DNA of 64,000 bases from Cyanophora paradoxa CCMP329 (taxonomy: Eukaryota; Plantae; Glaucophyta), in NCBI GenBank assembly GCA_004431415.1, contig QPMI01000503.1:62001-126000 (forward strand), read 5' to 3'. The notes beneath the pieces are model-generated. The model was not told the DNA's origin. It saw nothing but the letters and a program-made list of their open reading frames with translations, and searched no databases. The translations under genes and the position numbers were made by a program. Shown here piece by piece: positions 3,595-50,860 of this stretch (the stretch's first letter is position 1; each line of letters begins with the position of its first letter).

Positions 3595-4819
3595 CTACTC
3601 GGCCTTCTTGCCCTTCGACGAGGCAGACTTCGACCGCGAAGCCGGCTTCTTAAGGTACGACTGGACATAGAAGTTGCCGAACAGAGCGAGAAGGCTGAGC
3701 ATGTACCAGAAGTAGATCTGGATGAGGCCACGAGGGTAGTCGCACTTGTGAGTGAGGTCATAGACTGCTTGGCTGGCCATGGTCACAAACTGGAACATCT
3801 GCATCTTGGTGATGTGCGGCTTGACGACTGTGGTCACACGACGAATGAAGCTCTTCTCGCCGAGGCAGGTGCCAAGGTAGTACGAGTACATCACAAAGTG
3901 GATGAACGAGTTCAGAGCAGTCGAGTAATACGCTGTGACTTCGTCAGCACAAGTGATCCACTCTGTGCTATGCTGTATTGCATACCGTCGCCGCCGGGGG
4001 CGTGGGTCGCGATGTACCACCAGATGATGAAGATGGTGGTCTGAAAACTCAATTTAGCCAAACAAAGGGTGAAATTGAACGCGGGTTGTGCACGTGGTGG
4101 TAGACGTGGAGGAAGGAGACCTGGTTGAACTTGCCACGAAGGATCATGATGACCTGCAGAATGAACTTTCATTCGACGGGCATGGTGGTGCAAACCGCGA
4201 TGTACGGGCCGCACAGTGTCCATGAACTCGTACAGCTTCGACACGTAGAATATGTAAACGATATCAGCCATCTGTGCGCTCATCAGCCCTGGCTAACCTG
4301 ACGTCTGGAGCAATCCAGCATACCGCCTGGCCCTTCGGGCTCTTGTCGTACGCGTTGCAGAAGAACCCGTACTTGCCGTTCACGGCCTGGCGGATAGCCT
4401 CGGCGCACATGTAGCCACTCAGGCCGACCAGGAACACGTTGTGGAGGATCGAGAACAGCTTCAGCTGGAAGGGCTTGATGGCCTTCATGACCTGCAGGAT
4501 GTGAGACCAAGCACGAGCGCACGGATAGGGCACGCACGACCGAGCCAAGGATGACGAACGCAAGGTAGCCGGCGACGCACGCGAACACGACCTGGGGATC
4601 CATGAGGAAGCGCCCCTTGGTGTGCGCCACGGTGTTCTTCAGCGTCCTGGGGGAGCGCGACTCTGCGTGAGCGCGCGACGTGGCGCATAGGTGCGCCGGA
4701 GCCGCGCACCACTGGCGCCAGTTCTCGAAGTCAGCCGGGATCTGAGCGGGCTTGACATTCTTCACGTAGTCGACAGCCGCGTTCACGGCGTCGAAGTTGA
4801 TGAAGTCCTCAATCGCCAT
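3595..4819 (-). CDS. ELO/GNS1-SUR4 fatty acid elongase (PUFA/delta-6 elongase-like)
   Basis: Motifs FYVSKLYEFMDT, QVSFLHVYHH, NSFIHFVMYSYY, TKMQMFQF, LFGNFY and a C-terminal KKAE dilysine ER signal; several short introns. Confidence 0.95.
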
Positions 4820-5363
4820 GGCTTCGGCCCACGAACTAATCTGCGCAAGGTGCTTAGCGACCCGCTGAGCGACCCGGCGACACCAGCCGCCCGTGCCGCT
4901 CCCTCGCGAGCCGCCTCGCGGGGAGGGGCACGGGAGGGCTCCGGGCGAGATCGCCCAGCCATCGCGGGCATCTAAGCGCTATCAGAGACCCGAGAGAGCC
5001 CCCCGCACGCACCGAGCCGAGGAGCCACGAGATATCCCCCCCTTTTGCGACGTACCCGTACGGAGTTCGCTCAGGTCCGCGTGCCACGCATCGAGCACCA
5101 CGCGCTCGCCTTGAAACGGCTGCAGTTCGCAAGGGGAGGCTTCTACCAGCGCGTACCGGCACCGTTCGTGAGACACCGAAAACGGGTGCGCGAGGCGTGC
5201 GCGAGGGGTCTCGAATGCCCGTGCATGTGGTGCATAGATCGCCCGTGCTCATCGTGCCATGGCCCTGGCTCGCCGCGCTTCACGCGCCTCCCATAATAAT
5301 CTTCACCGCGCCTCAATCTCACGCGTCTGACCGAACTTCCTTGGGCGGCGCCGGGCGCACAGA

Positions 5364-6690
5364 ATGGAGGCGTTCGTCAGTCTTCAGCCCACAGTTTCGC
5401 GCTGTGTCGCCCGGCCTCACACAGTCTTCAGCCCTAGCGCACCTGTGTGCGCACTGGCGAGCGTGCGCACGGGCCGTCAGTCCAGCCTTGCTCGTTCGGC
5501 GTTCCTGGGTGTGCCCCGCAGCTTCGCGGCGACCCCGAGCAGCTCTGCAGCGGTTCAGTTCAGCGCGGCACAGGCAGCTTTCGTTCCGCCGACGCTTCCA
5601 GCCGTGCCCGAGGCCCTCTCCGGACTTTTCGTGCTGCTTGCCGATGCTGCCAACACGGCTGCGGATGCGGCTGCAAGCGGCGCCGCGGATGCGGAGCAGT
5701 CGAAGGGCCTCTTTGACATGTTCGTCGTGCTGATCGAGAACGCGCTGAAGACGCTGGAGGGCTCGCTAGACGGCGCCGGCGTGCCCTACGCATACGGCTT
5801 CGCCATCATTCTCTTCACTGTCTTCGTCAAGATCCTCACCCTCCCGCTGTCCCAGAAGCAGATGACCTCAGCTCTGTCAATGCAGGCCCTCCAGCCTAAG
5901 ATGAAGGAGATTCAGAAGCGCTACGCGAACGATCCCCAGAAGATGCAGCTGGAGACCGCAGCCCTGTACCGCTCAGCCGGCGTCAACCCGCTTGCGGGCT
6001 GCCTTCCCAGCCTGGCGACCCTCCCAATTTGGATTGGTCTGTACCGTGCCCTGACCTCCCTGGCCAAGGAAGGCGTTCTTACCAAGGGTGAGTTGCTATT
6101 CTTAGGTGAAACTAGGGGCTTGTCTCATCTATGTTTTTGCAGGCTTCTTCTTCATCCCCAGTCTGGCAGGCCCGGCCACCATTGATAACCCCGGCCTCAG
6201 CTGGCTCATCCCGTTCACCGATGGCGCGCCGCCGGTCGGCTGGGCAGACTGCGCGGCCTACCTTGTGCTCCCTGTCCTGCTGGTCGCGTCCCAGGTGTAC
6301 ACCATGAAGATGACGACGCCACAGACGAACGACCCCCAGCAGCAGCAGGCGAATGCCATTCTCAAGTTCCTCCCCTTCATGCTCGGCTACTTCTCGCTCA
6401 CCATGCCCTCGGGACTGTCTCTCTACTGGTTCACAAACAACATCCTCTCCACTGCCCAGCAGTGGTACATCAAGAAGACCTTCAAGGCCTCTTCCCTGAA
6501 GCCATCCGCACCAGCAGGCGCCCCGATGACCGTCGAGAAGGTCGTCGATGTCAGCTCATCGGCAATCTCCTCCAACGGCAGCAAGTCCCCAGCTGCGGCT
6601 AGCTCCGCACCGGCTAAGCCTACGCCTTCCACTAAGGGCGGCTCTGGCAAGTCGAAGCCTAGCAAGAAGTCGAAGAAGGGCAAGAACTAG
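5364..6690 (+). CDS. ALB3: Thylakoid membrane insertase ALB3 (YidC/Oxa1 family) with plastid transit peptide
   Basis: YGFAIILFTVFVKILTLPL, MQALQPKMKEIQKRY, GVNPLAGCLPSLATLPIWIGLYRAL, GFFFIPSLAGP, PSGLSLYWFTNNILSTAQQ; one intron ~6088-6142. Confidence 0.96.
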
Positions 6691-24429: not shown

Positions 24430-27400
24430 ATGGGTCCGTAGCGTTCGAAGTCCTGCAACGCCCCTCGTGACCGCACTTAAGCGCTTAATTCGCAGGCGAC
24501 GATGAGGCGAGAGCTGCCGATGTGCAGGAGATCGCCGACGGCTTTGCCTTGGCCGTGTGCGGTATCCTTGCTGCGGAGAGCGTCCAGGCGAGCCACGGAG
24601 ACAGCGCCGCCGACGGAGTAGCAGAGATCGTCGAGCGTGGGTATGATGGATTGATGCACACTCGCTCTGTACCGTGCTGACATTCACGCGGCGGACAGGC
24701 TCGAGGCGGCCAGCCGGCTCTTCTCAGGTGCGCTTGCTTCCTCTGCATGCAATCCGCGCATTGCACATTCGTAGCTAATATGATCTGCAGTGCTGACCGG
24801 CAGGGCCTTCGACCACGCGTTCGCGCTGGTGTCCGCTGTGCACGGCCTGGTCGAAGCGGAGAAGGTGTCCCTCAGCCGGAAGCAGTTTCAGTACCTCACA
24901 TCGATCATATCTTCGTTGTCGACTGTGCCGGACAACGAAGCGCGCCTGTTCAAACTGCTATGCTGGCGCATTTGCTCGGCCGGCGCGGCCAAGACGAAAG
25001 GTGCGGCCCGCACGAGCACAATACATCTTTCGCTGAGACGCCGTGAAGGTGCAAATTACAGCGGCATCTCCGAGGCGGTCGAGAAGGCGCTACGGAGCAC
25101 ACAAAATGCAGAGCTGAGGAGGAACATAGCGGATATCAAGAAGGAGCTCAGCGGTGCTCCGGCGCAGGGCAAGAAGTGCCAAGCGTTGTTCGACCTGCAG
25201 CACATGCGCGCGCAAGCTGCGAAGGCGGTTGGAAACTGGAGCTTCTCACAGGGGGCCTACCAGAAGGCGCGTGCTGCGGCGTCGCGCCTGCGGATCTCGC
25301 TGACACGGAGCAGGCAATCGTGTGCTACGATTTCGCAATCCAACAGTCTCCGGAAGACAAAGGAATCGACTCTGCCATCTTCTGGTCGAACCGCGCGCAG
25401 TGCCACTGGAAGCTGGAGCGCTACCAGCAGGTCATCCTGGATTGCACGGAAGCGATCGCCCGCGCGCCCTTTGCCAAGGCCTACGTGAGCGCTTCCGCAT
25501 GCGATCGCGGGGCGCGCGAGCTGATGCGCACCCCCGAACGAAGGCACGGCGTTCCAAGGCCCACGAGCAGCTGGGCGACCTCCTCGCTGCCTTGCGAGGT
25601 GCGCGGGGCGCCGGGCTACTCTGTCGCTCCGCGCCCGAGCGCCGCGCAGACGCACAGCAGTACATGAGGCTGGTCCCCGAGGACCGGGACGAGGCCGGGC
25701 GCGTTGCGGCCCTGCAGGCCACGGTCACGAAGCTGGGGCTCAGGCCCCCGTCGCCCTCCCCGGAGCCCGCCGCCCCGCCTCCGCCATCGGCCCCGCCCGA
25801 CGAGGAGAAGAAGAAAGGGGCGGCGAACGGCCCCGCAGAGAAGAAGGGGCAACAGCCGAAGGCGAAGGAGGAGGCGGCGACGGCCTCCTCCAAACGAGCG
25901 AAAAGGAAAGAGACGGGGACGAAGCAAAACGGGGCGGCCCCCGCGGCGCCGCCCCCGCCCCCGCCCCCGCCCCCGCCAGGTGCCGCGCCGCCCCATCCGC
26001 ACCTCGCCGCCGCCGGGCCCAACGCGCCGCAGCGCCCGAAGAGAAGGGGGTGCTGGTGAAGTGCGAGACGCCGGAGGGCCCGATGGAGATCCGGGTCCCG
26101 GAGGGCCTCTCATTCTCGGAGTTCAGACGGACCCTCATCACGTACCTGCAGGAGAAAGGCGTGTCGGGCCGCCAGCTGCGCTTCCTCCAGCTCCCGGAGA
26201 GGGGCCCCCTGCAGAACGAGGAGCAGCTGAAGCAGTTCCTCTCCCGCCGCGTCCCCTCGCTCGCCGTCGGTCCGGCCCGCCCCTGCGCCACGCGCCCCCG
26301 CCGCTTCCGATCCCGTGCGCCCTGCAGACACCTCTTCTGCATCGGTCGCCTCGTCTGCGCCGCCCGCGCGAGAGAAGAAGCATGAGGAGGCACCGAAACC
26401 AGCGCCGCCGGCCCCGGCTCCGCAGGCGAAGCTGCGCGCCGCGGCCAGCGGAAGGCCCGAGAGGGCGGCGGGGGCGTCGGTAAACGGCAGGTCCCGCGGA
26501 GGCGACGAGGCGCCTAGCGAGGCCCCGCGGGTCGCCTCCGCTGCCGCCGCCTCCGCCGCTGCCCCGCCCGCGTCAGAGGCTGGTGCGCGCCGCGCGCAGC
26601 GCCCCGCGCCGCGCCGCCCGGGCCGGTCCGAGGACGGCCGCCGCAGGCCGCTTCGAGCCGCTGCTGGAGGCGCTAGAGGAGGCACGGGGGCGGACGGGAG
26701 CCCCCGAAGTCGAGCTGGCGGTCCTGGCCCCGCTCCTCCGGTCGCGCCTGCCCAAGGCGCAGGGCGGCCGCCTCGCGGAATACGTCCAGTCGGCCGCCGA
26801 CGCCGGCGCCGTGGGGATCCGGCGGGACGGCGGCCTCCTTTTCGTGCGGCTGCCGGGCCTCCCCCGGGGCGGCCCGAGCACCGGCGTCGTCGAGGCCGTG
26901 AGCGACCCTTTCGGCTTCATCCGGCCCAGCGGGCCGCCCGCCGCCGGCGACCTCATCCCCTTCCACCGCCTCCACGTCGCCGTGCGCCCCGCCCCGCCCC
27001 GCCCCGCCCCCCGCCCCGCCTCTCGCTCGCCCTTGTTCATTTTTCGCTCAGGAGAGCTCCCCAGTGCCCTCCGTGGGCGACGCCGTCGAGTTCGTTGCCG
27101 TGTACGACCCGCAGACGAATCATGTGACGGCCTCGCATGTCCGCTGCATGGCGGGGGCCGGTTTCGCCCCCGCCGCCGGCGAAACCTCCTCCCCGCCGCC
27201 CGCCGCCCGCGACGGCGGCTGGCACACCGTCGGCGCGAGGGCCGTCCGTCCCGCCCCCGCGCCCAACGCCCCCCCTGCCCCCCTCGCCCACGGGGGCCCC
27301 AAGCCCTCCGTCACGCCTCTCTCCACCCCGCAGCGCCCCGGCCCCGCCGGCCCCATCCTCTCCCCGACCTCCAGCGCCACCCCCGGCCGCGCCCCGCCTT

Positions 27401-30259
27401 CCCCGAACCTCGGACCCCGTACCCCCGGCTCGGCGAGGCCCTCCCCGGCCTCGGCCGCCCCCCGGCCTCCCATCCACCCCCCTCCGACCCGGTCGCCCTA
27501 CGCCGTCCAGACCCCCCGCCTGGACCTTCGGGACAGGGATCTTTCCTACCTCCCCAAGGTCCCGCCCCGCGCCCCGACCGCCCCGCCCCGCCCCGGCCCG
27601 CCGCCTTGAGAGCTTCACGCCGCCTCGCAGGAGCTTAAGGACATCGATCTAAAAGGCTGCACGGCGCCTTGGCGCCTCAAGACGAAGATCTGCCGCCGCT
27701 GGATGGACACAGGGTACTGCGAACACGGGAAGGACTGCTGGTTCGCCCACGGCTCCCACGAGCTGCGAGACACCTCAGAGGTGCGCCGGTTTGGATCGGG
27801 TGGGTCGTTTTCGGAATCTTTCTTGGGGCTTGCGGTTTGTGATGAGCAACCTTCACCAACGCTGACGGCGGCGCCGTTAGCGCGTGAACTCCCCTCGGGG
27901 AGGGAACGCGCGCGGCCCGCCCTGAAGTATCAAAACTTCTCTGTATTCTGATCACCCGCTCCTTTGTTTTATTGGTTCTGGTTTCTCCATAGGTCTTCTA
28001 GATGCGCATTATATTCGCATTTTCGCGGTTTGTGTTGAGCAACCTTCACCAACGCTGACGGCGGCGTCGTTAGCGCGTGAACTCCCCTCGGGGAGGGAAC
28101 GCGCGCGGCCCGCCCTGAAGCATCAAAAACTTCTCTGTATTCTGATCATCCGCGTTCCATCGTTCTCTCCCTTTCTATAATTTTCACTTGGCGCTTCTGT
28201 GATGAGCAACCTTCACCAACGCTGACGGCGGCGCCGTTAGCGCGTGAACTCCCCTCGGGGAGGGAACGCGCGCGGCCCGCCCTGAAGCATCAAAAACTTC
28301 TCTATATTTTGATCATCCGCGTTCCATCGTTCTCTCCCTTTCTATAATTTTCACTTGGCGTCTTCTGTGATGAGCAACCTTCACCAACGCTGACGGCGGC
28401 GTCGTTAGCGCGTGAACTTCCCTCGGGGAGGGAACGCGCGCGGCCCGCCCTGAAGCATCAAAACTTCTCTGTATTCTGATCACGCGCCTTATCCTTTCCG
28501 TAGTTTTCTTTCGTTTTCTTTAGCCTGAGCGCGAATGATGCAACTGTTGCATGACTTTCCATGGATGACAAACAACATACACACGAGCTTTTTAAATCTG
28601 AGCGCTCTTCCCCGACCTTGCTTTACTCCCTTTCCTGCCGCTGTCCTTCGGGCGCGCACCGACGATGCGGCGCGCACCGCGCAGGGCTCCGGGAGTGCAT
28701 CCACGACGCCGTCCCGGCCTGGCCCCTCCGGGCACTCCCCCTCGTCCCGGCGCGGCGGCCCACCCTCGCCGCAGCCTGCCCCGCCCGCCCGCCATCCCCC
28801 GCACTCGCCCGCCCCAGCCCCCGCGGCGCCCCTCCCGCCGCCGCCCCCGCCGCCGCCCCCGCCCCCGCCCCCCGCCAAGCCCGTCCTGTCGGCGGAAGAG
28901 ATTCTGAGCCACGTGACGGCCGTGTACGCGGCCGTGGCCGGCGCGGTGTCGCCCACGGACGCCCAGACCAAGGTCTTCTGGCACGTCAAGAAGCTGAACC
29001 TCCCGGGGGACCACCCGCACCTCATCGCCGGCCTCGTCGTCTTCGGGCGGGAGTACCCCGAGCCGCTCGTGGCGGCCGCCTCCCGCGCCGTGGCGGGCCT
29101 CGTCCCGCAGCTCTTCGCCCCCGAGCAGCTCCTCGCCGGGCTCTCCATCGGCGCCGAGGGGGTGCTCGACTTCTACTCGCGCAACGCCGAGGCGGGGCCC
29201 CGCGGCTGGCGGCCCCTCCTCCTCTTCGCCGCCCGCTGCGTCTGCTCCCGCGTCCTCCACCCCTCGGCCCTGCCCCGCATCCTTGCCCCCCTCGCCCCCT
29301 GCGGCCTCGCCGCCCAAGTCGCCGCCACCTTCCTCCGCCTCGCCGCCGAGGAAATCGTGCGCCTCCCCGCACCCCCTCCCTTGCTCTGTGCTGAACCCCG
29401 CCCAAGGGCGAGGACGGGGTGCGGGAGCTGCTCGTGGAGGGCGCCATCGACTTCCGCTCCTTCTTCCCCCCCGTGGCGCGCGACAGCGACGACGTCCTCC
29501 TCGCCTTCCTCGCGGAGGCCGGCCTCCCCTCCCTCTGGAACTCCCTGTCACCCTCCCTCGCCGAGCGCGCCGCCCGGCGGGCCGAGGAGGCGCCCCCTGC
29601 CCCGTCCGCCGCCGTCCGGCCACCGCACCCGCCCCCGCCGGCCGTCGTACCCCCCTCGGACGAGGAGGAGCGGCTGCTGGAGGAGGCCGTTGCGGCGCCT
29701 CTACACGCCGAGTTACTGAGGGGGGTACTCGACGAGGAGGACGTCCTCTCGGGCCCCCTGGCACCTCCCGTGCCAATTGCTGCTGCACCGGTCGTCCAGC
29801 ACACACACCTCAGCCCCGTCCAGCCTTCGATCCCCCCCGGGCCCGCCCCGCCGCCCATGTCCTTCCATCCGCGGGTGCCGCACAGCCCCTCGCCTCCCTG
29901 TGCACTGTGTGCCCTGCTGACGCCCGGGCAGGCGCAGGAGCCGGAGGAGGAGAGCCTGGAGGCGTTCCAGGGGCGGCACTTGCTGTGCCCTATTTGTGGC
30001 GTGGCGTGGCTCAACCGCGACCCCGTCTCCCTCGACTGCGGCCACTGCTTCGTGCGCCGCGACCTCTTTGCACTCTCAATTGCGGCCCTGAATCTGCTCC
30101 CGTTTATGCATTCCCGCTTCGCAGTGCAACCAGTGCCTCCAGAGGGTGATCCTGTACTACACGGAGGAAACCAAGCGGACGGGCGTCGTCCTCTTCCCGG
30201 CGTGCCCAACTTGCGCCCGCCCGTTCCGCCAACCGCGTCGGCTTGCCGGCTGGACGTGA
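24430..30259 (+). CDS. Large multidomain putative RNA-binding E3 ligase: TPR - PB1-like - LOTUS/OST-HTH-like - cold-shock - CCCH zinc finger - MA3/MI-like - RING; snoRNA host gene
   Basis: TPR: AIFWSNRAQCHWKLERYQQVILDCTEAI..KAY. CSD: GVVEAVSDPFGFI..FH..VGDAVEF. CCCH: KTKICRRWMDTGYCEHGKDCWFAHGSHELR. MA3-like: VKKLNLPGDHPHLIAGLV..LFAARCV. RING: CPIC..DCGHCF/CNQC..CPTC; stop TGA at 30259. Confidence 0.8.
27832..27959 (+). ncRNA. Structured box C/D RNA copy 1 with U6 ACAGAGA-box antisense element
   Basis: Box C GTGATGA 27839-27845, box D CTGA 27948-27951, terminal GCGG/CCGC stem, two internal hairpins, guide CTTCTCTGTAT 27936-27946; intronic. Confidence 0.8.
28024..28154 (+). ncRNA. Box C/D RNA copy 2 (box C mutated to GTGTTGA)
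   Basis: Near-identical to copy 1; box D CTGA 28142-28145. Confidence 0.65.
28199..28320 (+). ncRNA. Box C/D RNA copy 3 (degenerate: guide CTTCTCTATAT, box D TTGA)
   Basis: Near-identical body with substitutions in the guide and box D. Confidence 0.55.
28357..28488 (+). ncRNA. Box C/D RNA copy 4 (intact)
   Basis: Box C 28367-28373, box D 28476-28479, its own GGCG/CGCC terminal stem. Confidence 0.8.
28527..28607 (+). ncRNA. SNORD36: Box C/D snoRNA, SNORD36/snR47 homolog guiding 18S rRNA Am (yeast A619 / human A668 equivalent)
   Basis: GAGCGC/GCGCTC terminal stem, box C ATGATG 28535, box D CTGA 28598-28601. Guide ACGAGCTTTTTAA is complementary to conserved 18S UUAAAAAGCUCGU in the same D+5 register as U36/snR47. 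Confidence 0.9.
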
Positions 30260-30507
30260 GATACTAGCTCGAATAACGAGGAAGGCAGGTGACCCACTTC
30301 CCGCGGCTCGGCAAAATGGATGCAGGCTTCGCTGAGCATTCCGTTGCCCAAATGTATGGGATTGCAGATATTAGAGCAGAGAGGGTAGGAGCAGAGAAGA
30401 GATCAGCCGCAGTGTACCAAGATGCTCGGAATGTTGTGAGGGGTGGCAAGAGTGGGTGGGCGAAACGAGCTGAAGAAAGTAAACGAGGCTGCTTAAGCTG
30501 CTGTTGA

Positions 30508-31409
30508 TCAAACACTCAAACGCAGACCCAAATATCTCGCAACAGCACGCCGACGTCGGTCTTTGGTGCCATGGGACGGGTTTGGCTGGTCATAGAACTG
30601 AAGCACCTCTCCCAGTTGCTGGTTCGTGAGAGCCAAGAGATGATCCCGATTGTGGATCTGAATAGGAGAAGGGGTCATCAAAGCCATCTCCCTACACGGT
30701 GACGGAGTGTTAGTCTGCAGCGCCGGCTGTTCGCGGATGCGCACTTATACGCACCCGCGTGCCATTGTCCATCTGCACCGTACGTATACAGCGCATGAGT
30801 GGCCGTTTGAACGCGTACGTGTCGCGTACCGCACGCACCCGGTTTAGGATCTGGTGCTGCTGATGCGAAATCTGCTGCTGCTGCTGCATCATCTGCTGGA
30901 TCTGTAGCTGCATCGGCTGGATCTGCTGGACCTGTTGCAGGATCTGCTGCAGGACCTGATGAATCTGCGGGCAAGAGTCAACGCGCCGCTCGCGTGCCCT
31001 GGCCACTGTGCACGTACGTTGGCGTTGTGTGGAGGCGCCGGGGCTGCGGCTGCTGCTGCGAAGACGCCGCTGGCTGCAGCGAGATGCTGCGACAGCAGGT
31101 TCATGTCGGCGGCGTTCAGAGCCATCAGTTCAAAGAGCAGCGTTGAATTCGAGTGGCGGGATGACACGACAACCGCGCGGGTGCAAGTGTCTAGGGAAGG
31201 GGGGGAGGAGACTGAAATCAATTCGAGTAGCGGGATAACTGTAACCGCAGTGCTAGCGTCTAGGGAAGGGGGAGGGGGGTGGGGGTGGGGGGCGGGGTAA
31301 AGGAGGCTGAAGTCACTGAAAGGAATGTGCGAACCTTGTCTAGCATCTCGTTCTGTCTTGAATAGGGGTTTTCCCTGTCCTGCGCGCCGTGTTTCCGTGT
31401 TTTCGGCAT
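30508..31409 (-). pseudogene. Mug135-like/polyQ gene copy 1, frameshifting deletion in last exon
   Basis: Same exons as the other copies but lacks the TMPVNANGQPC-coding segment near 30665, shifting the frame. Confidence 0.6.
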
Positions 31410-31670
31410 CACCTAGCCGCAGCTAGCCGTTCGGGCCGGGATAGTTCACCGATAAGCCGCAGCACCAAGTAAAACTAGCGCTCTATGCTTGCTAGTGCGC
31501 GTGCTGTCACTGCGCTCTGCTAGGTCGCAATCGAGCAAAGGAAACGAAACCACGCGTACCCCGTAGCAGGAGTCGCTAGTAGTCGCTGCTCAGTCGCAGC
31601 CTCAGAGTCGCAGGCCAGCTAAGCCGAGCACGCCTCGTCCTAGCTCGAGAATCTCACAAAGAGCAGCATT

Positions 31671-32200
31671 ATGGCCAAGAGAAGGGTGCGCGTACGCGTG
31701 CTGCACTCCGATCGATCTCGCCGCGCTCTGGCGCACAGCTACGAGAGCGCTAGCTGAAGACGCCTCGAGCAGAAGACGAGGCTTACGCATGTGACCACGA
31801 CGCCGGAGGAGAACGCCATTACCCAAGTCGTTCGTCTTCTGCAAGGGCGAGGTCGGTCACGCCGTACGCGAGCTGATAGAGGATCTGCGCCTCGTGATGG
31901 AGCCCAATACGGCGCGGAAGCTCAAAGTCAGCGCTTGCCGATTTGCGCGCGCGCCCCCTGTCTGAGCGCTGGCTGCAGGTGCGCAAGACGAACAAGATCA
32001 AGGACTTCGTGCACGTGGCAGGACCGCTAGGTGTTTCGCACTTCCTTGTGCTGACCTGCACCGACGTCGGCACGTACCTGCGAGCCATCAAGGTCCCGCA
32101 CGGGCCGACTGTCACGTTCCGTCTGTGTTCCTACTCGACGACCGCGGATGTGCAGCTGTCCCAATGCAAATGTAGGCGCATTGTATTGCTACACTACGGT
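31671..32200 (+). pseudogene. PPAN: Truncated, frameshifted PPAN/SSF1 copy
   Basis: Matches the 5' exons of 46367-47170, with a small deletion after ENAI and a large internal deletion after DVQ. Confidence 0.85.
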
Positions 32201-32850
32201 TGAAAACTGGAGCTTCAACAAATGGAGATTCTCTAAGGGGGCCCATCGTCGGCGCGAGGGCCGCCCGACCCGCCCCCGCGCCCACCGCCCCCCCCGGCCC
32301 CCCTCGCCCACGGGGGCCCCAAGCCCTCCGTCACGCCTCTCTCCACCCCGCAGCGCCCCGGCCCCGCCGGCCCCATCCTCTCCCCGACCTCCAGCGCCAC
32401 CCCCGGCCGCGCCCCGCCTTCCCCGAACCTCGGACCCCGTACCCCCGGCTCGGCGAGGCCCTCCCCGGCCTCGGCCGCCCCCCGGCCTCCCATCCACCCC
32501 CCTCCGACCCGGTCGCCCTACGCCGTCCAGACCCCCCGCCTGGACCTTCGGGACAGGGATCTTTCCTACCTCCCCAAGGTCCCGCCCCGCGCCCCGACCG
32601 CCCCGCCCCGCCCGGCCCGCCGCCTTGAGAGCTTCACGCCGCCTCGCAGGAGCTTAAGGACATCGATCTAAAAGGCTGCACGGCGCCTTGGCGCCTCAAG
32701 ACGAAGATCTGCCGCCGCTGGATGGACACAGGGTACTGCGAACACGGGAAGGACTGCTGGTTCGCCCACGGCTCCCACGAGCTGCGAGACACCTCAGAGG
32801 TGCGCCGGTTTGGATCGGGTGGGTCGTTTTCGGAATCTTTCTTGGGGCTT

Positions 32851-32979
32851 GCGGTTTGTGATGAGCAACCTTCACCAACGCTGACGGCGGCGTCGTTAGC
32901 GCGTGAACTTCCCTCGGGGAGGGAACGCGCGCGGCCCGCCCTGAAGCATCAAAACTTCTCTGTATTCTGATCACGCGCC
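32851..32979 (+). ncRNA. Box C/D RNA copy 5 (U6-antisense), hybrid of copies 1 and 4
   Basis: Box C 32858-32864, box D 32967-32970; 5' flank of copy 1 and 3' flank of copy 4. Confidence 0.75.
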
Positions 32980-33017
32980 TTATCCTTTCCGTAGTTTTCT
33001 TTCGTTTTCTTTAGCCT

Positions 33018-33098
33018 GAGCGCGAATGATGCAACTGTTGCATGACTTTCCATGGATGACAAACAACATACACACGAGCTTTTTAAATCTGAGCGCTC
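33018..33098 (+). ncRNA. SNORD36: SNORD36/snR47 homolog, second copy
   Basis: Identical to 28527-28607. Confidence 0.88.
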
Positions 33099-34996
33099 TT
33101 CCCCAACCTTGCTTTACTCCCTTTCCTGCCGCTGTCCTTTGGGCGCGCACCGACGATGCGGCGCGCACCGCGCAGGGCTCCGGGAGTGCATCCACGACGC
33201 CGTCCCGGCCTGGCCCCTCCGGGCACTCCCCCTCGTCCCGGCGCGGCGGCCCACCCTCGCCGCAGCCTGCCCCGCCCGCCCGCCATCCCCCGCACTCGCC
33301 CGCCCCAGCCCCCGCGGCGCCCCTCCCGCCGCCGCCCCGCCGCCGCCCCGCCCCGCCCCCCGCCAAGCCCGTCCTGTCGGCGGAAGAGATTCTGAGCCAC
33401 GTGACGGCCGTGTACGCGGCCGTGGCCGGCGCGGTGTCGCCCACGGACGCCCAGACCAAGGTCTTCTGGCACGTCAAGAAGCTGAACCTCCCGGGGGACC
33501 ACCCGCACCTCATCGCCGGCCTCGTCGTCTTCGGGCGGGAGTACCCCGAGCCGCTCGTGGCGGCCGCCTCCCGCGCCGTGGCGGGCCTCGTCCCGCAGCT
33601 CTTCGCCCCCGAGCAGCTCCTCGCCGGGCTCTCCATCGGCGCCGAGGGCGTGCTCGATTTCTACTTGCGCAACGCCGAGGCGGGGCCCCGCGGCTGGCGG
33701 CCCCTCCTCCTCTTCGCCGCCCGCTGCGTCTGCTCCCGCGTCCTCCACCCCTCGGCCCTGCCCCGCATCCTTGCCCCCCTCGCCCCCTGCGGCCTCGCCG
33801 CCCAAGTCGCCGCCACCTTTCTCCGCCTCGCCGCCGAGGAAATCGTGCGAGCCTCCCCGCACCCCCTCCCTTGCTCTGTGCTGAACCTCCAATCAAAGGG
33901 CGAGGACGGGGTGCGGGAGCTGCTCGTGGAGGGCGCCATCGACTTCCGCTCCTTCTTCCCCCCCGTGGCGCGCAACAGCGACGACGTTCTCCTCGCCTTC
34001 CTCGCGGAGGCCGGCCTCCCCTCCCTCTGGAACTCCCTGTCACCCTCCCTCGCCGAGCGCGCCGCCCGGCGGGCCGAGGAGGCGCCCCCTGCCCCGTCCG
34101 CCGCCGTCCGGCCACCGCACCCGCCCCCGCCGGCCGTCGTACCCCCCTCGGACGAGGAGGAGCGGCTGCTGGAGGAGGCCGTTGCGGCGCCTCTACACGC
34201 CGAGTTACTGAGGGGGGTACTTGACGAGGAGGACGTCCTCTCGGGCCCCCTGGCACCCCCCGTCCCCATTGCTGCTGCACCGGTCGTCCAGCACACACAC
34301 CTCAGCCCCGTCCAGCCTTCGATCCCCCCCGGGCCCGCCCCGCCGCCCATGTCCTTCCATCCGCGGGTGCCGCACAGCCCCTCGCCCCCCTGTGCACTGT
34401 GTGCCCCGCTGACGCCCGGGCAGGCGCAGGAGCCGGAGGAGGAGAGCCTGGAGGCGTTCCAGGGGAGGCACCTGCTGTGCCCTATTTGTGGCGTGGCGTG
34501 GCTCAATCGCGACCCCGTCTCCCTCGACTGCGGCCACTGCTTCGTGCGCCGCGACCTCTTTGTACTCTCAAGTGCGGCCCTAGATCTGCTCCCGTTTATG
34601 CCTTCCCGCTTCGCAGTGCAACCAGTGCCTCTAGAGGGTGATCCTGTACTACACAGAGGAAACCAAGCGGACGGGCGTCGTCCTCTTCCCGGCGTGCCCA
34701 ACTTGCGCCCGCCCGTTCCGCCAACCGCGTCGGCTTGCCGGCTGGACGTGAGATACTAGCTCGAATAACGAGGAAGGCAGGTGACCCACTTCCCGCGGCT
34801 CGGCAAAATGGATGCAGGCTTCGCTGAGCATTCCGTTGCCCAAATGTATGGGATTGCAGATATTAGAGCAGAGAGGGTAGGAGCAGAGAAGAGATCAGCT
34901 GCAGTGTACCAAAACGCTCGGAATGTGAGGGTTGGCAAGAGTGGGTGGGCGAAACGAGCTGAAGGAAGTTAACGAGGCTGCTTAAGCTGCTGCTGA

Positions 34997-35693
34997 TCAA
35001 ACACTCAAACGCAGACCCAAATATCTTGCGACAGCACGCCGACGTCGGTCTTTGGTGCCATGGAAAGGGTTTGGCTGGCCATAGAACTGGAGGACCGTTC
35101 CCAGCTGCTGGTTCGTGAGACCCAAGAAGTCGTCCCGATTCTGGATCTGAATAGCACAAGGCTGCCCGTTCGCGTTCACTGGCATGGTGAAAGGGTCATC
35201 AAAGCCATCTCCCTTCACGTCGATGGTGTGTTAGTTCGTGCAGGAAATAGCGCGTATGCGCATGGAATACGAACCCGCGTGCCATTGTCCATCTGCACCG
35301 TTCAGCGCATGAGCGGCCGTTTGAACGCGTACGCGTCGCGCACTGCACGCACCCGGTTTAAGATCTGTTGCTGCTGATGCGATATACGCTGCATCTGCTG
35401 CTGCATCTGCTGCTGCTGCTGCTGCATCTGCTGCTGCATCTGCTGCTGCTGCTGCTGCATCTGCTGCATCTGCTGCTGGATCGGCTGGATGTGCTGCACC
35501 TGTTGCAGGATCTGCTGCAGGACCTGATGAATCTGCGGGCAAGAGTCAACGCGCCGCTCGCGTGCCCTGGCCACTGTGCACGTACGTTGGCGTTGTGTGG
35601 AGGCGCCGGGGCTGCGGCCGCTGCTGCGAAGACGCCGCTGGCCGCAGCGAGATGCTGCGACAGCAGGTTCATGTCGGCGGCGTTCAGAGCCAT
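34997..35693 (-). CDS. PolyQ coiled-coil protein with Mug135-like (DUF1773-type) C-terminal domain, copy 2 (possible upstream start 35952)
   Basis: MALNAADMNLLSQH../IHQVLQQ..polyQ..ILNR/MDNGTR/GDGFDDPFTMPVNANGQP..LTNQQLGTVLQFYGQP..GTKDRRRRAVARYLGL; the L..FYG....G...R......LG pattern. Confidence 0.6.
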
Positions 35694-36229
35694 CAGTTCA
35701 AAGAGCAGCGTTGAATTCGAGTGGCGGGATGACACGACAACCGCACGGGTGCTAGCGTCTAGGGAAGAGGGGGGGGGGAGTGATATCAATTCGAGTAGCG
35801 GTAACTATAAACGCGGTGCTTATGGCGTCTAGGGAAGGGGGGGAGGAGGCTGAAATAACTGAAGGGAATGTACGAACCTTGGCTTGCATTTCGTTCTGTC
35901 TTGCATAGGGGTGTCTTCTGTCCTGCGCGCCGTGTTTTCGTGTTTTCGGCATCGCTCAGCCGCAGCTATAGCTAGCCGTTCGGGCCGGGGTAGTTTGCCG
36001 ATAAGCCGCAGCACCACGCGATGCTATAAGCGCTCTAGGCGTGCTAGTGCTGTCGCTGCGCTCTGCTAGTCGCTGCGATGATCGCAATCGTGCAAGGCGA
36101 ACGAAACCGAGCCTACCCCGGAGCGCCCCCGCAGGGCCCGCACGGCCCCGCAGGCCCGCGGAGCTAAGCAAACGATCCCAGCCTCACCACGCCTCGTTCG
36201 AGCTCGAGAAGCGCAGAAACAGCAGCAGC

Positions 36230-37978
36230 ATGGCCAAGGGAAGGGTGCGCGTACGCATGCAGCACTCCGATCGATCTCGCCGCGCGCGGGCGCGCATCCA
36301 CGAGGGCGCTAGCTAACGACGCCTCGAGCAGAAGAAGAGGCGTACGCATGTGACCACGACGTTGGAGGAGAACGCCGTGAAGATCCCGAAGTCGTTCGTC
36401 TTCTGCAAGGGCGAGGTCGGTCACGCCGTATATCCACGACGCCGTCCCGGCCTGGCCCCTCCGGGCACTCCCCTCGTCCCGGCGCGGCGGCCCACCCTCG
36501 CCGCAGCCTGCCCCGCCCGCCCGCCATCCCCCGCACTCGCCCGCCCAGCCCCGCGGCGCCCTCCCGCCGCCGCCCCGCCGCCGCCCCGCCCCCGCCCCCG
36601 CCAAGCCCGTCCTGTCGGCGGAAGAGATTCTGAGCCACGTGACGGCCGTGTACGCGGCCGTGGCCGGCGCGGTGTCGCCCACGGACGCCCAGACCAAGGT
36701 CTTCTGGCACGTCAAGAAGCTGAACCTCCCGGGGGACCACCCGCACCTCATCGCCGGCCTCGTCGTCTTCGGGCGGGAGTACCCCGAGCCGCTCGTGGCG
36801 GCAGCCTCCCGCGCCGTCGCGGGCCTCGTCCCGCAGCTCTTCGCCCCCGAGCAGCTCCTCGCCGGGCTCTCCATCGGCGCCGAGGGCGTGCTCGATTTCT
36901 ACTTGCGCAACGCCGAGGCGGGGCCCCGCGGCTGGCGGCCCCTCCTCCTCTTCGCCGCCCGCTGCGTCTGCTCCCGCGTCCTCCACCCCTCGGCCCTGCC
37001 CCGCATCCTTGCCCCCCTCGCCCCCTGCGGCCTCGCCGCCCAGTCGCCGCCACCTTCCTCCGCCTCGCCGCCGAGGAAATCGTGCGCCTCCCCGCACCCC
37101 TCCCTTGCGCTGTGCTGAACCCCGCCCAAGGGCGAGGACGGGGTGCGGGAGCTGCTCGTGGAGGGCTCCATCGACTTCCGCTCCTTCTTCCCCCCGTGGC
37201 GCGCGACAGCGACGACGTTCTCCTCGCCTTCCTCGCGGAGGCCGGCCTCCCCTCCCTCTGGAACTCCCTATCCCCTCCCTCGCCGAGCGCGCCGCCCGGC
37301 GGGCCGAGGAGGCGCCCCCTGCCCCGTCCGCCGCCGTCCGGCCCCGCCCCCGCCCCCGCCGGCCGTCGTACCCCCTCGGACGAGGAGGAGCGGCTGCTGG
37401 AGGAGGCCGTTGCGGCGCCTCTACACGCCGAGTTACTGAGGGGGGTACTCGACGAGGAGGACGTCCTCTCGGGCCCCCTGGCACCCCCCGTCCCCATTGC
37501 CGCTGCACTGGTCGTCCAGCACACACACCTCAGCCCCGTCCCGCCTTCGATCCCCCCGGGCCCGCCCCGCCGCCCATGTCCTTCCATCCGCGGGTGCCGC
37601 ACAGCCCCTCGCCCCCCTGTGCACTGTGTGCCCCGCTGACGCCCGGGCAGGCGCAGGAGCCGGAGGAGGAGAGCCTGGAGGCGTTCCAGGGGAGGCACCT
37701 GCTGTGCCCTATTTGTGGCGTGGCGTGGCTCAATCGCGACCCCGTCTCCCTCGACTGCGGCCACTGCTTCGTGCGCCGCGACCTCTTTGTACTCTCAATT
37801 GCGGCCCTGAATCTGCTCCCGTTTATGCCTTCCCGCTTCGCAGTGCAACCAGTGCCTCTAGAGGGTGATCCTGTACTACACAGAGGAAACCAAGCGGACG
37901 GGCGTCGTCCTCTTCCCGGCGTGCCCAACTTGCGCCCGCCCGTTCCGCCAACCGCGTCGGCTTGCCGGCTGGACGTGA
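36230..37978 (+). pseudogene. Chimeric PPAN(5')::MA3-RING pseudogene, unit 3
   Basis: PPAN start exons joined at CACGCCGTA|TATCCACGACG to the host-gene exon, out of frame; further indels downstream. Confidence 0.75.
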
Positions 37979-50044: not shown

Positions 50045-50860
50045 ATGGAGGCGGAGGCCTTCCGCAAGATCCATCCGAGCCTGTTCGTGCGCAAGTTTCT
50101 CGAGCAAGGATTACGCCCCGATGGCCGCACGCTTCTCAAGGCGCGCAAGCTCACAGTCAGTCACGGCAATGTCTCCAGCGCGGACGGCTCAGCCCTGGTT
50201 AAGCTCGGCAACACAACAGTCGTAGCTGGGGCGAAAGCCGAGGTCGGCGTACCGGACGACGCATCGCCCGCAGCGGGCAAGCTCGAGATCAGCGTCGAGC
50301 TCACCCCCTTGTCGGCGTCCCGCTTCCGACCGGGCAAGCAATCGGACGAGTCCATGTGCGTTGAGGAGTACGTACGACAAGTGCTATCTTCTGCAGGCGT
50401 TCTCGATCCGCTGCAGCTGTGCATCTCGGAGCGGAAGGCGGTGTGGGTGTTGTACGTCGACATCTATTGCGTAGACAACGACGGCGGTGCGCTGGACGCG
50501 AGCCTGGCAGCGGCGGTGGCGGCGCTCTCGAACACGACGCTCCCGCGCGTCGCCCTCTCGGAGACCGGGGAGGTGATCAAGGAGGCGGGCGGAGCACGAA
50601 TGCCCCTCACTGTTGCCCACTACCCAGCATCCGTCAGTTTCGCAATGGTCGAGGGGCACGTCGTGGCAGACCCCACTGCAGAGGAAGAGGCCCTTGCGAC
50701 GGGCGCCGTCACTGTCTGCCACGACGAGCTCGGGCGCCTGTGCACTGTGTATAAGGCTGGGGGCGCCCCCTTCAAGCAGGATGTCCTTCAATCGGTTATA
50801 GGGACTGCTAGCACAATTACCCTTGCGCCCCGTTTCCAGAAGTCTTTGCGAGGCAGGTAG
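50045..50860 (+). CDS. RRP43: Exosome complex RNase PH-like subunit RRP43 (EXOSC8), intronless
   Basis: AFRKIHP..LRPDGR, GSALVKLGNTTVVAG, LCISERKAVWVLYVDIYCVDNDG, VADPTAEEE. Confidence 0.9.
   Translation: MEAEAFRKIHPSLFVRKFLEQGLRPDGRTLLKARKLTVSHGNVSSADGSALVKLGNTTVVAGAKAEVGVPDDASPAAGKLEISVELTPLSASRFRPGKQSDESMCVEEYVRQVLSSAGVLDPLQLCISERKAVWVLYVDIYCVDNDGGALDASLAAAVAALSNTTLPRVALSETGEVIKEAGGARMPLTVAHYPASVSFAMVEGHVVADPTAEEEALATGAVTVCHDELGRLCTVYKAGGAPFKQDVLQSVIGTASTITLAPRFQKSLRGR

Follow-up and report, generated by a model that had tools for sequence, protein, structure and literature searches.

What are the repeated units that fill an unusually long intron of the glaucophyte alga Cyanophora paradoxa, and on which RNA would they act? 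The intron (27781-28684, forward strand, as are its snoRNA genes, those of the paralogous intron and the upstream exon) belongs to a gene for a CCCH/RING zinc-finger protein and lies in a 64,000-nt stretch of strain CCMP329 (GenBank assembly GCA_004431415.1, contig QPMI01000503.1, positions 62,001 to 126,000), hereafter the window. Judged by their sequence, the units are box C/D small nucleolar RNA (snoRNA) genes within a host intron. Our best explanation, to which we assign a probability of about 50%, is that they are canonical two-guide box C/D snoRNA genes with the C of the ACAGAGA box of U6 small nuclear RNA (snRNA) as their predicted target. An earlier, sequence-only reading of the window had proposed a tandem array of structured, amplified box C/D RNAs antisense to that box, which may act as guides or chaperones, and its claims are taken up below where our results bear on them.

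Layout of a unit and its predicted pairing with U6

The intron holds four head-to-tail units, the number given by the sequence-only reading; their length is 128-133 nt rather than the proposed 125 nt or so. Start-to-start periods are 193, 167 and 168 nt, with spacers of 37-65 nt. Each unit runs from box C through a 16-nt guide, a D' CUGA, a 55-nt hairpin, a C'-like UGAAGU and a 19-nt guide to box D, and this canonical order and spacing of C, D', C' and D around two guides supports their assignment as two-guide snoRNA genes. In copy 1 (27832-27959), box C GUGAUGA occupies unit positions 8-14 (27839-27845), followed by the D' guide GCAACCUUCACCAACG at 15-30 (27846-27861) and D' at 31-34 (27862-27865). 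Downstream of D' follow the GC-rich hairpin at unit positions 36-90 (27867-27921), the C'-like box at 92-97 (27923-27928), the 19-nt D guide AUCAAAACUUCUCUGUAUU at 98-116 (27929-27947) and box D CUGA at 117-120 (27948-27951), and a terminal stem, GCGG/CCGC, closes the two ends of the unit.

The D' and C'-like boxes, both assigned by sequence only, directly flank the hairpin. In the minimum free energy fold of the intact copies, the hairpin forms as a single 55-nt element that leaves D' and C' free, and every unit folds more stably than its shuffled versions (z of -2.4 to -4.0). The alternative of two separate GC-rich hairpins, put forward by the sequence-only reading, was 8.5-12 kcal/mol worse, and the first of the two would bury D' in a helix. 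With its start 1 nt past D' and its end 1 nt before C', the 55-nt hairpin would correspond, at the internal kink-turn, to the terminal stem. The unit is therefore not special for being structured: its core is a long D'-C' stem, ordinary if long for a two-guide box C/D snoRNA. Substitutions between copies do keep pairing, as had been noted, with both C>T (C>U) differences in the hairpin lying opposite G in either fold model; these two transitions are compatible with the structure and carry no statistical weight. Terminal stems measure 4-5 bp in copies 1 and 4 and 3-4 bp in copies 2, 3 and 5 (about 3 bp in copy 5). Those of copies 1 and 4 indeed differ while remaining self-complementary, at 4 bp each (GCGG/CCGC and GGCG/CGCC).

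The case for U6 comes from the D guide. Just 5' of box D, the stretch CTTCTCTGTAT (also CUUCUCUGUAU, 1 nt from box D) is complementary at every base to AUACAGAGAAG, a conserved region of U6. In copy 1 this U6-complementary core, CTTCTCTGTAT(T), spans 27936-27947 and is the exact complement of ATACAGAGAAG; its D+5 base, G27943, pairs with the C of ACAGAGA (equivalent to human C42). The 11/11 pairing described by the sequence-only reading was thus recovered with the register it had proposed. Computed against the conserved U6 motif, from which the U6 of C. paradoxa may differ, the duplex has 11-12 bp and -16.5 kcal/mol, a value equalled by 2 of 5,000 shuffled guides. A perfect in-register 11-mer would arise by chance with a probability of about 2e-5 per guide against a 105-nt U6, and of about 1.5e-3 against all ribosomal RNAs (rRNAs) and snRNAs. 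The U6 of Ostreococcus tauri, given in a published supplement, has AAUACAGAGAAGAUUAGC and would pair with the D guide over 12 Watson-Crick base pairs.

For the D' guide, no comparable target was found. GCAACCUUCACCAACG did not match O. tauri U6. By eye, it pairs at nine of ten positions with what we take to be helix 45 of 18S rRNA, on its 5' strand and loop (CGUAGGUGAA), with the mismatch adjoining the D'+5 base. We judged this pairing not significant and rejected helix 45 as a target.

In the mechanism that we propose, the host gene would be transcribed and its intron or pre-mRNA cut and trimmed to RNAs of about 128 nt. The terminal stem would shield their ends, together with a C/D kink-turn carrying Snu13, Nop56, Nop58 and fibrillarin, and the 55-nt GC-rich hairpin would link D' CUGA to the C'-like UGAAGU and form the internal kink-turn's stem. 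Once the 3' guide had paired with U6 over AUACAGAGAAG (11-12 bp), fibrillarin would 2'-O-methylate the ACAGAGA C by the D+5 rule. The array itself may have been born of recent local tandem duplication, with copies 2 and 3 now decaying.

Five copies, a SNORD36-like neighbour and the host gene

In the window, the 18-nt motif formed by guide and box D has five occurrences (0.02 expected), namely in the four array units and in a single unit farther downstream. The sequence-only reading had seen box C GTGATGA and box D CTGA in every unit; this holds for copies 1, 4 and 5, where box C lies near the 5' end and box D near the 3' end, and fails for box C of copy 2 and box D of copy 3. Besides copy 1, the intact units are copy 4 (28357-28488; box C 28367-28373, box D 28476-28479) and copy 5 (32851-32979), which is the only unit in the corresponding intron of a tandem host-gene paralogue that lies about 4.5-5 kb further downstream. 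These three copies look functional from their sequence. Copy 2 (28025-28154) retains its guide and box D (CTGA, 28142-28145) and has GTGTTGA in place of box C (28032-28038; A>T at 28035). A box C change of this GUGUUGA type deletes one of the tandem sheared G-A pairs that Snu13 needs for binding the C/D kink-turn, and copy 2 is probably dead. Copy 3 (about 28190-28321) has an intact box C (28199-28205) and is damaged twice: in its guide, where the D+5 base (28304) has changed from G to A, and in its box D (TTGA, 28309-28312). Its guide would form a duplex of only -10.3 kcal/mol with the U6 core, and it is probably a decaying copy.

These lesions are not errors of this assembly, because contigs of independent runs agree with the window: those of runs X1 and X2 (27898/27929-28065) at the copy 2 sites, and one of run X12 (28221-28418) at 28304 and box D of copy 3. 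A contig of run X12 has, within copy 3, bases of the copy 4 type at 28234 and 28251 (both C>T), and it is one base short at 28361; this suggests strain variation, gene conversion between copies or chimeric assembly of the repeats.

All five copies are 96-97% identical, and changes are no rarer in boxes and guide than elsewhere in the unit. Selection for dosage is therefore not apparent in the array, and to speak of a snoRNA amplified in copy number, as the sequence-only reading did, goes too far: lesions mark two of its four copies, and an identity of this level is uninformative on selection. Copy 5 combines a 5' flank of the copy 1 type with a body and 3' flank of the copy 4 type. Local duplication or unequal crossing-over would therefore connect the one-copy state with the four-copy one.

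The sequence-only reading overlooked copy 5 and also a further snoRNA in the same intron, at 28529-28606. The latter matches the SNORD36 family (Rfam RF00049) over the full-length model (1-77) with 31.8 bits, the gathering score being 30, and its D guide GAGCUUUUUAA, a conserved 18S guide, can pair with UUAAAAAGCUC in that rRNA. This gathering-threshold match within the intron supports the view that the neighbouring units are snoRNA genes. The 3' splice site of the host intron follows 78 nt behind the end of the SNORD36-like snoRNA, the distance reported as the optimum when mammalian intronic snoRNAs are processed in a splicing-dependent manner. Its counterpart in the paralogous intron (33020-33097) is 100% identical to 28526-28609. 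A simple scan of the window for further C/D candidates returned only the units described here and two unconvincing stretches (4141-4306 and 4790-4873).

As the sequence-only reading had it, the array lies inside an intron of about 0.9 kb. This intron measures 904 nt, has GT..AG ends and is spliced: contigs of the RNA-like runs X1, X2 and X7 join 27780 to 28685, the joint reading 27778>28683 with a cut of +2, and an upstream 72-nt intron (27557-27628) is likewise removed in these three runs. The exon between the two (27629-27780) encodes a CCCH zinc finger (CRRWMDTGYCEHGKDCWFAH) according to its open reading frame (ORF) translation, its bounds coming from contig pieces (27629-27781) and the splice joints. 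The improved assembly of C. paradoxa has a GC content of 67.6%, 9.2 introns per gene and a mean intron length of 86 bp, instead of the 60 nt or so named by the sequence-only reading as usual, and the host intron is about ten times the mean. We searched the host protein in pieces, exon by exon; its matches in EukProt were three entries only (tig00020912_g15815, g15817 and g15819), all paralogues within the same genome. No orthologue outside the C. paradoxa genome was found in the protein database searched, and the exact protein sequence was also absent from the contig index.

The host gene is tandemly duplicated across 27228-37000 with a period of about 4.5-5 kb. Its first unit carries four snoRNA copies and its second one; a third begins at 36432, right behind a copy of the unit tail, and has neither the CCCH exon nor the snoRNA intron. 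A loose end of run X7 at 28699 fits the junction of this third unit. Within 27431-27510, one X12 contig omits 78 nt with GG..CA ends; either repeat slippage or a non-canonical joint may account for this in an exon that is proline-rich and GC-rich. Elsewhere in the window, two apparently intron-free ORFs encode an RNase PH-type exosome subunit (50045-50860; Pfam RNase_PH and RNase_PH_C) and a 60KD_IMP (Oxa1/Alb3-type) insertase (5364-6185).

U6 or another substrate

That U6 is the true substrate is a sound prediction from the guide, with roughly even odds. The stronger claim that in U6 of this glaucophyte the ACAGAGA C carries a 2'-O-methyl group placed by a box C/D snoRNA both lineage-specific and intron-encoded is tentative, and we lean slightly against it. 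Several observations weigh against the proposed target or against a working snoRNA. Published maps of U6 2'-O-methylation in human (A47, A53, G54, C60, C62, C63, A70 and C77), Arabidopsis (U27, A43, A48, C57, C63, A65 and G75, by RiboMeth-seq) and Schizosaccharomyces pombe (A41 and A64, with evidence for C55-C57) have no site at the ACAGAGA C, as the sequence-only reading had correctly stated for the commonly listed vertebrate sites. U6 accounts for only 12 of the 19 guide nucleotides, so that a longer rRNA match is possible, and where very many windows are scanned, chance alone should now and then produce an 11-mer match to U6. In Rfam, the units matched no family, whether the window, the intron or a single unit was searched, at gathering or permissive thresholds (cmscan E up to 10). 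The hits that did appear on the units were discarded as noise (half-models of archaeal sR33/sR10, mir-9456, and ceN28 on the other strand). A metagenome scan with a pattern of box C, 65-95 nt and then CTTCTCTGTATNCTGA gave 17 loci, by our estimate about the number expected by chance, and none had a terminal stem or snoRNA-like context; they include two duplicate pairs, and two come from human-gut metagenomes and look bacterial at the match. Finally, the contigs show transcription and splicing of the intron but not the ends or abundance of a 128-nt RNA, with near-identical copies inflating contig depth; one contig bridges the spacer between copies 1 and 2, indicating precursor RNA or DNA. The near-identity of the five copies, with lesions in boxes and guide as elsewhere, points the same way.

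The main rival is that the units encode a genuine box C/D snoRNA whose true target is a site in rRNA (or transfer RNA) specific to the lineage, the U6 match being fortuitous. We consider this unlikely, although it has precedent on its side, since most C/D snoRNAs target rRNA: in O. tauri the counts are 111 of 131 for rRNA and 5 for snRNA alone. The seven guide nucleotides without U6 pairing would fit such a site, which may lie in a variable rRNA region of C. paradoxa, and scanning at genome scale makes some chance matches likely. Against this stands the low probability, given above, of a perfect in-register 11-mer to U6 for any one guide. Moreover, among the Rfam families that rest on conserved rRNA sites, none hit the units even with E as high as 10, and we know of no conserved rRNA core segment with ACAGAGAAG. 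Ranked after this explanation, and less probable again, is that the units are an orphan or non-functional, recently amplified snoRNA-derived repeat, without stable processing into a small nucleolar ribonucleoprotein or without a substrate. The lesions in two of the four array copies (box C in one, guide and box D in the other), the near-identical copies with no visible constraint, the lack of a target for the D' guide and of homologues in Rfam or the metagenome pattern scan, and run contigs that do not demonstrate a mature RNA are all consistent with it. Yet three copies, including the one in the paralogous gene, have kept perfect boxes, stems and guide; a full C/D'/C'/D layout with a very stable internal stem is improbable in junk; and the intron is shared with a conserved SNORD36-like snoRNA.

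The sequence-only reading had also suggested that the RNA might act as a chaperone, binding or sequestering the ACAGAGA box without methylating it, which we regard as very improbable. Non-methylating C/D snoRNAs such as U3 and U14 do exist, and complementarity to U6 is the one observation in its favour. However, the pairing stops 1 nt from box D, in the standard register for methylation, and is as long as guide pairings ordinarily are. The complementarity is neither extended nor bipartite, and special domains are absent. As the D'/C' stem, the long hairpin is accounted for too, and we found nothing that supports a chaperone role as such. The two-guide snoRNA with U6 as predicted target remains our preferred reading.

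If this reading is true, the consequence would be a ribose methylation inside the ACAGAGA box, the U6 segment that lies next to the catalytic centre and base-pairs with the 5' splice site. The spliceosome's reader of the 5' splice site would then be modified differently among major eukaryote lineages, at a C that adjoins the N6-methyladenosine site, and the array would offer a testable handle on the effect of a 2'-O-methyl group there in an alga rich in introns, at 9.2 short ones per gene. A confirmed methylation of this C would raise the interest of the array. Our literature search found no study of snoRNAs in Cyanophora, nor any relevant mention of the guide sequence; if the prediction holds, the units would be among the first snoRNAs described for glaucophytes. 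Should the target be rRNA, or none, the array would be one more intronic snoRNA cluster, as known from green algae.

Comparison with known U6 guides, SNORD36 and algal snoRNA clusters

Both box C/D guides on this region of U6 and intronic tandem snoRNA clusters in algae are well known. Guides pairing with this part of U6 include SNORD7 (2'-O-methylated A47), ACA12 (pseudouridine 40), snoZ30 and Neurospora CD11. The closest likeness is to mgU6-47/SNORD7/snoZ30, together with Neurospora CD11, which is partially similar to mgU6-47: they are box C/D RNAs, often intron-encoded, with a guide on the ACAGAGA-AGAUUAGC part of U6, and the mgU6-47/SNORD7/snoZ30 guides direct fibrillarin to U6. They differ in the nucleotide selected. 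In that family, it is the last A of ACAGAGA (human A47, S. pombe A41) that falls at D/D'+5, whereas the units would select the C, 5 nt further 5', and their predicted pairing spans U6 38/39-49 without reaching into AGAUUAGC. The units have no D-like box behind CUUCUCU, as the mgU6-47 register would need, in line with the different register put forward by the sequence-only reading. No U6-guide family appeared among the cmscan hits with E up to 10, searched with 1 kb and with a single unit.

The neighbouring snoRNA at 28529-28606 resembles SNORD36 (U36) in reaching the Rfam gathering score and in carrying the 18S guide GAGCUUUUUAA in the same register. It differs from SNORD36 in its diverged D' half, and it is a neighbour of the array, separate from its units. 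As for genomic arrangement, intronic or polycistronic clusters in Chlamydomonas reinhardtii and O. tauri likewise contain several snoRNAs per intron of a protein gene, including tandem paralogues that arose by local duplication. In contrast to these green algal and plant clusters, the present host is a glaucophyte CCCH/RING gene that is itself tandemly amplified.

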